54,526 nucleotides of DNA from Octopus bimaculoides (GCF_001194135.2 NC_068985.1:16898166-16952691), one strand, 5' to 3'; positions 29,418-47,632 are shown, counted from the stretch's first letter. Made by a program: numbers and translations. Notes: generated by a model from the sequence alone, not told the origin.

Positions 29418-30349
29418 CTAACACTCAAGTGTACTTTGTACATTTCTGTTATTTCTTTCATTAATCCTCTCTAGGAGAACAGATATCTGATCATTACCAG
29501 TTTCTGAAACAGTATAACTTATGCTGTCACCTCCGTTCAGTCTAGAGTTTATAAATGTATTGTTTTTATATACTTCAAATGACATAGAGTCAGAAATTTT
29601 TGAATTCTTGTCAAAACTGAAGTTAGACAAAGTTTCATTTATTTCAAATTTGGGGAACATGTCAGTGTACCAATTAGGAAACATCCTTTGTTTATAGTCT
29701 CGAGAAACTAAAGCATCATTTAAATTTTGTATTTCTCGACTTTCTTTCCAGTTCATTTGGAATTTTACATGGTGTCTACTTGGTTGTATTTCAGACTGTT
29801 GGTCATTTATGTCACACAAGAGATTTTCAATTTGATTCAAGTCCAGACTATTATTATTTCCCAAAACATTTGGCCTGTATAAGTAATAAATATTTTCTTG
29901 GGAATCAGAGCATAACTGAGAATTTTCAAAATTACTTAGATCTTCAAATGTTACATGAAAAATGTTTTTTAATTTATTCATATTATCTTTAGTGCAGAAT
30001 TTAACAAGCTCAATTGTAAAATCAGCCATTTCTTGACCAATTCCATTTTTTTCCTCATTCTGGTAATGATAATACAAACCATCTGAATGCACAATGATGA
30101 AGGTGTTGAAATAGTCATAAACATGTTGAATTTGTTTCTTAAGCAATTTGTTTCTTTTTAATTTCATTTTGTGGGAACTTCTGACATGTAAACTTGTATA
30201 ACTGTTTAGCATTATTGTTAGTTCTTTGACTGCGGCACAGTGCTCCATGGGGTAAGGGAAACATATAACCAAGCCTTGTTGCTGAGCTGTATCCTGGTTT
30301 ATGTTGGTGCACTGTAAATATTTCAAACATTTTCTTCTTTGAAGTATCA
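29418..30349 (-). CDS. IL17R-like terminal exon: juxtamembrane, SEFIR, IL-17RA-type extension, tail
   Basis: Longest real ORF in the window (310 aa); acceptor ctgatttacag|TG. SEFIR-like blocks LVICFPYPMEHCAAVKELTIMLNSY, FIIVHSDGLYY, DFTIELV and NIFHVTFED. These are followed by IENLLCDIND...NWKESREIQNLNDAL...QRMFPNWY, resembling the IL-17RA extension (FEEVYFRIQD...[15 protein letters not shown]...QVRCPDWF, from memory). Confidence 0.9.
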
Positions 30350-46120: not shown

Positions 46121-47632
46121 GTTTCATGCAGGCATAGTGTGGATTCGATCCTTGATCGCCAAATTTCACTCAACAGTTCAGTACTTTTCTCATGGTAAAA
46201 CAATAGTTTTTCTGTGAGTGAACGCAGTTACATTTGCCAGATGCCTTTGTTAAGCAGAATAATGTCTTTGCCACTTAACCCTTCTAAGCTCTTCTAGGCC
46301 ACCAAAAGCTAGAATAGAGATAACAGACCACCTATGAAATTCATTGTTCTCAACAATATGTCTCTCCTTCTAACTAGTTTGGATAAATACTAAAACACTG
46401 TAGGTAAAAGGTAGTTGGCAAAAAGGAAATGACGCAGAGGCGACCACAGGCAAAATCCAGTGAGTGAGATAATTCAAGTGAGAGAAGGCTTACAGTGAGA
46501 ATGTCAACTATGATACAGTGTCTTATCACAACACCACAGCTGTTTAGATGTCAGGCACAATGAAGGTATCATTTTATCGACTTCCTACACTTAAACATTC
46601 ACTCTGTCTTCCTCTAATTCCTAGTTAGGCAGCTAGCAGTTGACCAAACATAACCAACAACAACATACAAGAAAAGATAACACTATTGTTTTTATTTGAT
46701 ACACACACCTGCCCGTCAAGGCATGTCATTATACAAAGTAACAGTAAATAAATATTTCCTTACAACTTTGATCACTGTTCTTCTTCCATCTTGCATACTG
46801 GCAACCAACACTTTAACAATAACCATTACAATTAGTGACTCTCGATTGCAACAAAGAATTAACCGTTACATATACATATGCATACATATTTCAAAATGCA
46901 ACCACATGTGAAGTCATGGGTGCTGTGTTGATTTTTAATTTTGTGAGCATATCCATGAGTGTTAGACATATAGAAGTCAAAAAGGTGCCCAACGTTGTTG
47001 TTGGAAAAATGATGGATGGTCGTGTGGTTGGCTGCCAAGTCATTTACCAGACGTTGGGGCTTTAATGTATCCATGTCCAGGAAAGCAAGAAGCTCAACGT
47101 ATGGTAGATGCCCGATGGCGGATATTCATCTGGTTGCACATTTCTGAACCAGATTCCAGGAGATTAATATGCCAAGCAAGATAGAGGTTCCAGGTGATGC
47201 AAACTCTAAGTATGGACATACTATAGTCATATACAGCTTTAAATAGACAGCTGGAGAGCAGCTTGATAAAGGAAGCATTTCCTCTCATCTATTATAACAT
47301 TTGTTTGATCAGTACCTTGAGGATAGAATTTAGTAGGCAGAAATTGTCTGGACATGAATAATCTAAGTTATCTTCCCTTATTGATCTCTTTATGGCTAGC
47401 AGGGCCACACCCAATGAATGAAACAAGCAAAAGAACATAGAATGAAGAAAACATTGTTATAATACAGTAAGAAGTCTTACCGCAGAAATTAGTAGAGATT
47501 TCACGACAGTTTGTCCTTCTTTCATCAGTTGTATCTTAACACAAACAACTTGTTCATTTAACTCAAGAACATGAAGTTCGAAGTTCTGATTGCAAGAAAT
47601 AACTTTCGCTTTGTGTGTCAAATTGATTATGT
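29418..47632 (-). CDS. IL17R: Interleukin-17 receptor-like gene (FnIII-like ectodomain, TM, SEFIR plus extension); spliced, 5' end incomplete
   Basis: Exons 47632-47481, 44098-44030, 41287-41212, 38593-38445, 36862-36785, 34699-34645, 33785-33705, 31730-31596 and 30349-29418 all have AG/GT boundaries and matching phases (1-0, 0-0, 0-1, 1-0, 0-0, 0-1, 1-1, 1-1, 1-stop). They give a stop-free ~575-aa product. Ectodomain NFELHVLELNEQVVCVKI...F..IDSSEQFTITI resembles IL-17RA D1 (ELSVLQLN..LCVRF...VDPDQEYEVTV, recalled from memory). TM is AIWILILVLILSLIICLFMIL followed by QRRK. Subtype (RA versus RD) cannot be assigned. Confidence 0.88.
31596..31730 (-). CDS. IL17R-like stalk plus transmembrane exon (VSFISTTSQPYFSTTHIQPLKGSSQGSAIWILILVLILSLIICLF)
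   Basis: Acceptor ttttcttttgatatattttag|TG and donor TTTA|gtaagt; 135 nt, phase 1-1; clear hydrophobic run. Confidence 0.9.
31778..31971. mobile_element. Tc1-type MITE just upstream of the TM exon acceptor
   Basis: TIRs cagggtaggtcaaaagt / acttttggcccaccctg, followed by TA. Confidence 0.7.
32384..32601 (-). mobile_element. SINE family C nested in family B (TSD agcttctta); other C copies at 6220-6412, 33370-33572, 38090-38300, 47870-48070 (-) and 41630-41830 (+)
   Basis: Direct repeats at 32375-32383 and 32602-32610; core cgaccccgaaaggatgaaaggcaaagttgacctcggcggaatttgaactcagaac. Confidence 0.85.
33705..33785 (-). CDS. IL17R-like membrane-proximal exon (CNWNTSSELQAKQNLCGDFEQETTLAP)
   Basis: Donor CCAG|gtgaga is strong. 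Acceptor ttttgtgtcaag|GT is weaker and completes a Cys codon. An alternative in-frame acceptor lies at 33764 (ttcttcag|AG). Confidence 0.75.
34645..34699 (-). CDS. IL17R-like ectodomain exon (VKPLQLNKPYLATFLRIP)
   Basis: Acceptor atgattgtttag|GTG and donor CCAT|gtaagt; 55 nt, phase 0-1. Confidence 0.82.
36215..36560 (+). mobile_element. 3' end of an RLE-type (restriction-like endonuclease; R4/NeSL/Hero-like) non-LTR element
   Basis: KEDTYGQLLQNLQLLY...FIPIIIGALG...KICKTFLKFQM*, followed by a short 3' UTR and an A-rich tail. Confidence 0.7.
36785..36862 (-). CDS. IL17R-like ectodomain exon (HHQTKKAQVFFNYSCFQECKRTYRVM)
   Basis: Acceptor ccttttttttctgaag|CAT and donor ATG|gtgagt; 78 nt, phase 0-0. 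Confidence 0.85.
38445..38593 (-). CDS. IL17R-like ectodomain exon (ECVSFHCKNEKEFLAISLSHLDKRTAKYNVSVTLKNDPLLITWCEQTFHM)
   Basis: Acceptor cttcctgtctcttgcag|AG and donor ATG|gtaaat; 149 nt, phase 1-0. Confidence 0.85.
40844..40968. mobile_element. 125-bp piggyBac-type MITE
   Basis: TTAA-CCTTTAGCAT ... ATGCTAAAGG-TTAA: perfect TIRs with TTAA target sites. Confidence 0.8.
41212..41287 (-). CDS. IL17R-like ectodomain exon (IRLLMEKQGGYYWSQVFKYENNAIP)
   Basis: Acceptor gttctgttatcag|ATC and donor CCAG|gtaaat; 76 nt, phase 0-1. Confidence 0.85.
42832..43049 (-). mobile_element. 218-bp mariner-derived MITE
   Basis: Perfect TIRs ttatccagaaagtttgtgccaattt flanked by TA; the interior encodes a mariner C-terminus (KPPQFWEEGIFKLKERWRRIVQQNGSY). 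Confidence 0.88.
43467..43564. repeat. 98-bp loop-less palindrome (one mismatch) at a contig edge
   Basis: agggattagcaattgagttgcttctccaacatactgaaaa|ttttcagtatgttggagaagcaactcaattgctaatccct; centre at 43515/43516. Confidence 0.95.
44030..44098 (-). CDS. IL17R-like ectodomain exon (NNHTAIAKFRPDFIDSSEQFTIT)
   Basis: Acceptor ctcttatttctttag|AAC and donor ACT|gtaagt; 69 nt, phase 0-0. Confidence 0.85.
44591..45400 (+). mobile_element. Degenerate Tc1/maT-like DNA transposon (5' two-thirds)
   Basis: MEQFTTEQRILIVK..., APNESTVQRLMMKFKTTGSV, RILHKDLHMHVYKIQL and AHFHLSGFVNKQNCRIWG.ENP. Confidence 0.82.
45490..45780 (+). mobile_element. Penelope-like GIY-YIG endonuclease fragment
   Basis: NVVYRIQCNKCNNVYVGRTIRPLHIHIKEH...KEIVLIDRLGPQINN. 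Confidence 0.78.
46900..47340 (-). mobile_element. CR1/L2-like LINE 3' fragment
   Basis: ILEFASPWN..HINLLESVQKCATR..HLPYVELLAFLDMDTLKPQRLVNDL...HGYAHKI (across frameshifts). Confidence 0.75.
47481..47632 (-). CDS. IL17R-like ectodomain exon (xIINLTHKAKVISCNQNFELHVLELNEQVVCVKIQLMKEGQTVVKSLLISA)
   Basis: Acceptor ttgttttttcag|AC and donor GCG|gtaaga; 152 nt, phase 1-0, open. Confidence 0.88.

Follow-up and report, generated by a model that had tools for sequence, protein, structure and literature searches.

A tandem pair of octopus type-I receptor genes with a homogenised signalling exon and a tentative, very divergent SEFIR-like cytoplasmic domain

The interleukin-17 (IL-17) receptors, represented here by human IL-17RA (structure 4NUX) and by the Mytilus receptors IL-17R-A to -F, are type-I membrane proteins with a cytoplasmic beta-alpha-beta domain, SEFIR, and a C-terminal helical extension whose motif ends in P[ND]W[FY]. 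In the mussel, the SEFIR domain is carried on a single exon and the receptor genes occur as neighbouring pairs (PMC8353272), while the expansion of IL-17-like ligands in octopus, with 31-36 genes, is among the largest known (PMC8353272). Here we describe LOC106868483 (gene B), a gene on the minus strand of a 54,526-nt stretch of Octopus bimaculoides genomic DNA (NC_068985.1:16898166-16952691; the window, to whose whole length all positions refer unless another sequence is named), together with its tandem neighbour, gene A. Gene B has in common with the IL-17 receptors the type-I topology and, putatively, a cytoplasmic domain in register from betaA to betaD and the extension motif, and its locus shows the same single signalling exon and paired arrangement as in the mussel. 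Unlike the IL-17 receptors, it fails the Pfam SEFIR model, lacks the conserved SEFIR tryptophan of the alphaB region and has no IL17R_fnIII_D1/D2 match. The TIR receptors and adaptors (MyD88, TLR1/2/6/10 and SIGIRR) belong to the same STIR-type alpha/beta fold class according to Foldseek, but they give no sequence or profile signal for gene B, in which the TIR boxes are not recognisable. A literature search for the locus identifiers or for octopus IL-17 receptors found nothing specific. The gene model was already known and its function unannotated; what is new here is the domain-restricted concerted evolution of the tandem pair and the tentative assignment of a very divergent SEFIR-like domain. 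We put at about 0.55 the probability that gene B functions as a SEFIR receptor of the IL-17R type.

The RefSeq protein XP_014769260.1 (P0005; "uncharacterized protein LOC106868483 isoform X1"), of 621 amino acids (aa), matched the exons of the window exactly. Nine minus-strand exons were located within 47632-29418, with a total of 1727 nt and about 575 stop-free codons; all the exons of the window were flanked by AG...GT, and the intron phases of the nine were consistent (1 in; 0, 0, 1, 0, 0, 1, 1, 1), confirming that the nine-exon structure is real and belongs to an annotated gene of uncharacterised product. The last of them contains a 312-codon open frame (30356-29421, minus strand) 100% identical to P0005, and at its acceptor (ttacag/TG; slashes mark splice junctions) an ATG codon is completed, whose A is the final base of the preceding exon. 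The gene has 11 coding exons in all. The second is a micro-exon (ttgccag/ATT...TAC T/gtgagt), whose counterpart in Octopus sinensis (24465-24492 of the orthologue locus, L007) also has AG/GT flanks, and the first (aa 1-37, with the signal peptide and the donor AGC/gtaagt) lies about 14.5 kb past the window end, at 60122-60232 of a newer, chromosome-level O. bimaculoides assembly (L006). A preliminary description, made from the sequence alone, had proposed a hidden gene of nine canonical, phase-matched exons, spanning 29418-47632 in a probable cephalopod genome, encoding an intron-rich type-I single-pass receptor and probably annotated as uncharacterised, if at all. Its nine exons, its cephalopod origin and its receptor topology all agreed with the RefSeq match, and position 47632 proved to be a true exon boundary; the gene continues, however, upstream of that span with the micro-exon and exon 1, and it is not hidden, since RefSeq annotates it with three isoforms, albeit under the label "uncharacterized protein". 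De novo chaining of exons by splice-site scores was ambiguous (proposing, for example, a (SL)n-containing exon at 37631) and was replaced by the exact RefSeq mapping, by which the 37.5-kb stretch is intronic. The window itself has 35.5% GC and a CpG observed/expected ratio of 0.34; it is rich in (CA)n/(TA)n tracts and interrupted by N gaps at eight places.

An orthologue was identified in O. sinensis, LOC115212086 (XP_029636773.1, P0045, 620 aa), which shares the 11-exon structure and its splice sites. The two proteins are collinear, with 94% of aa identical N-terminally and 92% C-terminally; the orthologue also follows gene A in tandem, has a matching partial duplicate on its 3' side and is likewise labelled only as "uncharacterized". 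It differs in lacking one codon of the cytoplasmic domain and in the tract of homology between genes A and B, which in O. sinensis reaches at least 370 bp beyond the stop codon. The ratio of nonsynonymous to synonymous substitution rates (dN/dS) between the orthologues was 0.30 overall, with 0.13 in the cytoplasmic domain (aa 336-545), 0.06 in the transmembrane (TM) and juxtamembrane region, 0.57 in the ectodomain and 0.51 in the C-terminal tail. Three ectodomain exons (41212-41287, 38445-38593 and 34645-34699) were 100% identical in nucleotide sequence between the two species, with introns at about 87-94%. The dS of the ectodomain (0.053) was well under that of the cytoplasmic exon (0.149), which conversion between paralogues may inflate. 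A 312-codon frame in a 35% GC genome, the 88-92% identity of the terminal exon to proteins of the second species and the overall dN/dS together indicate that this is more than a chance reading frame.

The predicted protein has a hydrophobic N-terminus, encoded by exon 1, and its hydropathy profile shows one strong TM peak, at aa 294-314 (Kyte-Doolittle 3.37 at aa 295), directly followed by QRRK, which fits the positive-inside rule. Ten cysteines, seven N-glycosylation sequons (N-X-S/T) and a Ser/Thr-rich stalk lie N-terminal to the TM helix. The ectodomain spans about 270 aa, the conserved alpha/beta domain on the cytoplasmic side about 210 aa and the tail about 75 aa, and the protein has the type-I single-pass topology of the IL-17 receptor family. 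LOC106868483 is a functional spliced gene for a 621-aa type-I membrane protein under purifying selection.

An exhaustive HMMER search of 1.84 billion representatives (E<=0.001) returned, besides the query itself, only the proteins P0003 and P0004, with 27-28% identity confined to the cytoplasmic domain, and the profile search that followed yielded no further family members. P0004 is an uninterrupted 550-aa open reading frame (ORF) carried by a full-length mRNA, on 2.2-kb RNA-seq contigs of three Logan assemblies (SRR29271474, SRR29271458 and SRR29271460), and P0003 is a single-exon ORF call on a 233-kb ENA genome contig (ERZ21867824); no orthologues of either were found in two Octopus proteomes.

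A SEFIR profile including the extension was built from the exon fragments of mussel IL-17R-A to -F (PMC8353272 supplement), human IL-17RA, and human and mouse IL-17RB, and was compared by hhalign with a six-member profile of the gene B family. The human IL-17RA bait was 100% identical to PDB 4NUX. A database search meant to enrich the SEFIR profile gave only vertebrate IL-17RA/RB fragments, and the mussel sequences were used instead; these were chosen by availability, not by similarity, and the match to the IL-17RA motif had been seen before they were added. A single in-register alignment of 191 columns was obtained (score 24.9, P 0.008); it runs from betaA (GLVICFP) past FIIVHSDG and IFHVTF as far as the C-terminal motif. 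In 1000 controls with shuffled columns or blocks, this score was never reached (means 12.5-14.0, standard deviation about 2.3). The family core alone scored 19.4 against SEFIR (P 0.034) and the extension alone 25.5 (P 0.002, with an extension template of three sequences), while the whole family profile scored 29.0 (P 0.0018) against the mussel SEFIRs alone; the hhalign probability in the comparisons of the whole family profile with SEFIR was only 5-15%. A hidden Markov model (HMM) of the mussel SEFIRs gave all four Octopus proteins 9.3-12.7 bits, above all 300 decoys (at most 6.6 bits). In the putative extension, the motif NWKESREIQNLNDALVSRDYKQRMFPNWY pairs with a 30-residue stretch of IL-17RA (4NUX) and with GQHLSKCINWAANFEKQNPNWF of mussel IL17R-D; the columns NWKES..NL..AL...Q...PNWY are invariant in the family, in a region where the AlphaFold2 (AF2) confidence is below 50.

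The same comparisons bear on a second possibility, that gene B encodes a divergent TIR receptor, similar to IL-1R, SIGIRR or the TLRs, that signals via MyD88-type adaptors. Single-sequence AF2 modelling of the terminal exon was unusable, with a predicted local distance difference test score (pLDDT) of 31, whereas a four-sequence family alignment gave a mean pLDDT of 52.4 and a predicted template modelling score of 0.55; the core (residues 10-120) reached pLDDT 63-82 in the order beta-alpha-beta-alpha-beta-alpha-beta-alpha-beta. The high-probability Foldseek matches of this model were TIR domains (SPARTA 0.97 and MyD88 0.90; TMt 0.44-0.49) and the IL-17RA SEFIR, all at E>0.01. The 4NUX structure ranked seventh (E 0.025, probability 0.77), and 9OT1 ranked 10 and 11. 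The leading position of the TIR domains favours the TIR alternative, but the fold is common to TIR and SEFIR, and a model of low confidence does not allow Foldseek to tell them apart. The TIR matches were limited to about 115 columns, in contrast to the full-length alignment of 4NUX, which takes in the extension. No family member had a Pfam TIR match; hhalign of the family against a verified TIR profile (MyD88, TLR1/2/6/10) scored 13.5, at the null level (12.9 +/- 2.3), and the TIR HMM put decoys first, ranking no Octopus protein above them. A TIR receptor is thus quite improbable, and the evidence leans, through tests that are individually weak, to a domain of the SEFIR type over one of the TIR type.

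Several results weigh against a SEFIR assignment. Pfam SEFIR (PF08357) had no match even at E<=10 in the window exon, P0005, P0001, P0002, P0003 or P0004 (P0001 and P0002 being gene A products of O. sinensis), whereas all six mussel isoforms pass this model at E 1e-11 to 1e-29 (PMC8353272). Neither TIR nor IL17R_fnIII nor any other supra-threshold Pfam domain was found in any family member, and sequence-profile searches of the PDB with the cytoplasmic and ectodomain alignments gave no match. Comparisons by hhalign with three vertebrate SEFIRs (E 0.35) and with the vertebrate-only SEFIR profile (14.4, null level) were not significant; the largest block-shuffle score, 24.1, came close to the real 24.9; and in the reverse test, in which the family HMM was run against SEFIRs, TIRs and decoys, the SEFIRs were not picked out. 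On the same hhalign scale, the accepted relationship between SEFIR and TIR scored 17.5 (P 0.084) and the true positives, mussel against vertebrate SEFIR, 121.5 (P 1.6e-18), far above the 25-29 of the family. The profiles were shallow, with only three sequences in the extension part of the template, and the AF2 model was weak (mean 52, the other four models 38-44), with nothing in the PDB matched by Foldseek at E<=0.001. The ectodomain of gene B had no match to IL17R_fnIII_D1/D2 or any other Pfam model, and a generic fn3 signal appeared below threshold (E 0.0012-0.02) only in the membrane-proximal domain of the gene A paralogues.

These negative results would suit a cephalopod-specific orphan type-I receptor, in which the alpha/beta domain is not homologous to SEFIR, the similarity reflects a generic three-layer sandwich and a chance motif, and signalling proceeds through other partners. 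The empty standard family searches, the three family proteins (the query, P0003 and P0004) among 1.84 billion representatives, the low hhalign probability, and the Foldseek matches of comparable E-value to carbonic anhydrase, KaiC, PurE and asparaginase all agree with such an orphan. It does not sit well, however, with an hhalign alignment that keeps its register throughout the domain and outscores every one of 1000 shuffles, with a signal that is specific to SEFIR and missing for TIR, or with an extension motif common to human IL-17RA and mussel IL-17R-D in a protein whose architecture fits the IL-17 receptors. We regard the orphan receptor as unlikely, if a serious contender, and infer with moderate support that gene B carries, on its cytoplasmic side, a SEFIR-type (STIR-superfamily) domain that has diverged very far and has a C-terminal extension like that of IL-17RA. 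Gene B is nevertheless not filed as a member of the IL-17R family, because each test is weak and the gene fails the curated family model.

The preliminary description had read the protein as a fibronectin type III ectodomain followed by a SEFIR domain with its extension. The first of these was not borne out, the only trace being the sub-threshold fn3 of the paralogue (E 0.0012), and the check it proposed, HMMER of the translated exons against Pfam SEFIR and IL17R_fnIII_D1/D2, gave no match. The SEFIR domain survives as the weak hhalign lean and the 9-13 bits of the mussel HMM, in the face of an empty Pfam search; the extension survives through its invariant motif and its own alignment, tempered by the small template and the low AF2 confidence. 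Its structural check was likewise divided between the rank of 4NUX among TIR-fold matches and the weakness of the model and of every E-value. Its suggestion that the receptor may serve part of the expanded octopus IL-17 ligand repertoire is speculative.

The tandem arrangement is present in both Octopus species, with gene A (LOC106868403 in O. bimaculoides, LOC115212051 in O. sinensis) followed by gene B (LOC106868483 and LOC115212086, respectively), 7.9 kb downstream in O. bimaculoides and at a similar spacing in O. sinensis. Gene A has the same architecture as gene B and a shared cysteine pattern (HC, SCFQxC, IPCN). From the signal peptide to the juxtamembrane region, the orthologues were 94% (B) and 81% (A) identical and the paralogues within a species only 24%; sub-threshold fn3 was seen in the gene A ectodomain and none in that of gene B, and exon 38593-38445 was the sole ectodomain exon with detectable similarity to gene A (local alignment score 70; controls reached at most 43). 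Over the stretch between GLVICFP and the C-terminus, in contrast, orthologues were about 92-93% identical and paralogues within a species 92-93%. In nucleotide sequence, the terminal exon was closer to gene A of the same species (96.5%) than to its own orthologue in O. sinensis (94.4%). The homology between A and B starts only at about exon position 63, inside the exon and 62 nt past the acceptor, and in O. sinensis an A/B identity of 96-99% runs about 370 bp past the stop codon. Of the informative sites at positions 63-932, 15 grouped the sequences by species and 14 by orthology, the latter concentrated at 63-185, with none in the third pattern. Counterparts of this tract are at L006 51347-52210, L005 77457-78329 and L007 53159-54087. 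This pattern of identities and sites is the hallmark of recurrent gene conversion after speciation, limited to that part of the terminal exon which encodes the signalling domain. O. sinensis LOC115212051 (P0001/P0002) had been considered as an orthologue of gene B with a hyper-divergent ectodomain (a jump from 20% to 92% identity), and was rejected when a second downstream gene was found, the true orthologue, 94% identical in the ectodomain; domain-restricted conversion explains the apparent hyper-divergence in that comparison.

The partial duplicate of the terminal exon that lies 3' of gene B (Table 1) also occurs in O. sinensis (L007 54690-55008), and is therefore older than the species split. 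Newer RefSeq models, XP_014769126.2 (1149 aa) and XP_014769143.2 (1096 aa), join genes A and B (P0044 is the RefSeq A+B fusion model) by splicing from a cryptic GTAAGT donor inside the gene A terminal exon (GGTGACAGC/gtaagt; L006 52097-52113) to the acceptor of the gene B micro-exon; gene B has ATAAGT at the place of that donor. The fusion may be real read-through splicing or a modelling artefact. The duplicate just downstream, and RefSeq models that were altered between releases and now fuse both genes, would also be expected if gene B were a decaying or non-functional copy, or an annotation artefact, arising from local duplication. This explanation is strongly disfavoured by the intact frame, the splice sites kept in the second species, the dN/dS values (overall and cytoplasmic) and the three exons identical between species, leaving it scarcely credible.

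If the IL-17R-type reading of gene B is right, ligand binding by the ectodomain would bring the cytoplasmic domains together, and the gathered SEFIR-like domains would engage an Act1/CIKS-like SEFIR adaptor through homotypic contact. The signalling module would then be identical in both chains, with the ligand-binding surface differing between A and B, whether they act as separate receptors or, on the model of IL-17RA/RC, as a heteromer; the divergent ectodomains and homogenised signalling exons suggest that one module receives its input from two ligand specificities or from a heteromeric pair. A broader proposal, speculative and rather doubtful as a whole, is that A and B form a cephalopod-specific, cryptic IL-17-receptor-like pair with a SEFIR domain beyond the reach of Pfam, which would serve, as a heteromer or with dual specificity, part of the 31-36-gene octopus IL-17-like repertoire, the signalling exon being kept identical by conversion while the ectodomains diverge freely.

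Table 1. Features of the gene B locus in the window, all on the minus strand
Feature	Position	Strand	Basis and remarks
Micro-exon, 28 nt	52030-52003	-	aa 38-46 ITPAANVSY and first base of codon 47; acceptor phase 0, donor phase 1; exact P0005 match; outside the span 29418-47632
Ectodomain exon, aa 47-97	47632-47481	-	ttttcag/AC ATA...GCG/gtaaga; 93.4% nt identity to L007 29815-29966, AG/GT flanks
Ectodomain exon, aa 98-120	44098-44030	-	P0005 mapping; 98.6% nt identity to orthologue
Ectodomain exon, aa 121-145 and 1 base	41287-41212	-	P0005 mapping; 100% nt identity to orthologue
Ectodomain exon, aa 146-195, start of membrane-proximal beta-rich domain	38593-38445	-	P0005 mapping; 100% nt identity to orthologue
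Ectodomain exon, aa 196-221	36862-36785	-	P0005 mapping; SCFQxC motif common to gene A and P0004
Ectodomain exon, aa 222-239 and 1 base	34699-34645	-	P0005 mapping; orthologous splice sites
Ectodomain/stalk exon, aa 240-266 and 1 base	33785-33705	-	P0005 mapping; orthologous splice sites
Exon with Ser/Thr-rich stalk and most of the TM helix	31730-31596	-	TM helix AIWILILVLILSLIICLFMIL, aa 294-314, from 31650
Terminal exon: end of TM helix, juxtamembrane, conserved cytoplasmic domain, Ser/Asn-rich tail, TAG stop	30349-29418	-	312-codon open frame
Putative SEFIR-like alpha/beta core, aa 336-446	29946-30278	-	AF2 pLDDT 63-82; in register with SEFIR betaA-betaC (score against mussel SEFIR 29.0, P 0.0018)
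Family-invariant motif NWKESREIQNLNDALVSRDYKQRMFPNWY, aa 511-539	29667-29753	-	Aligns to the IL-17RA SEFIR-extension helix region
Gene-conversion tract shared with gene A (exon positions 63-932)	29418-30287	-	Identity pattern and informative sites
Partial duplicate of terminal-exon codons ~455-565, ~330 bp	28485-28817	-	~93% nt identity; 600-900 bp 3' of the stop codon

Five assembly gaps fall within the gene span (31224-31260, 34868-34877, 39103-39928, 42380-42389 and 43093-43466), all of them intronic, so that the reading frame is not at stake. At each gap the window lined up collinearly with the orthologue locus of O. sinensis, which is free of gaps. All ten exons in the window have counterparts there with AG/GT at the corresponding positions, and the exon complement is the same, indicating that no exon is concealed in a gap; the chromosome-level O. 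bimaculoides assembly has identical gaps. Most gaps (22422-22431, 31224-31260, 34868-34877, 42380-42389, 43093-43466 and 48383-48813) border on (CA)n/(TA)n/(TC)n microsatellites, which probably caused the assembly breaks, and the window end (54526) adjoins another gap in the chromosome-level assembly (L006 72413-74739). Gap 31224-31260 is contained in a repeat insertion of about 456 bp (31471-31013) in the last intron, present in O. bimaculoides only and missing at that site in O. sinensis; many copies of this repeat occur elsewhere in L007 at 80-94% identity, and a related element resembling a short interspersed nuclear element is found at 32382-32606 and elsewhere. Two other fragments of mobile elements were detected, both on the plus strand: a mariner/Tc1-type DDE transposase (Pfam Transposase_1, E 7e-8) at 21529-22011, downstream of the gene, and a helix-turn-helix (DUF4817) transposon remnant at 44804-45019, in the intron between the 47.5-kb and 44-kb exons. 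An Rfam search of the window gave no match.

Whatever the outcome for SEFIR, the locus offers a clean example of domain-restricted concerted evolution, in which conversion keeps the signalling modules 92-97% identical while the ectodomains remain at about 24%. Should the SEFIR reading fail, the family would still represent a receptor under constraint, restricted to cephalopods, whose signalling domain is uncharacterised. If it is true, this signalling domain is one that Pfam misses, and censuses based on SEFIR would undercount the IL-17-type receptors of cephalopods.

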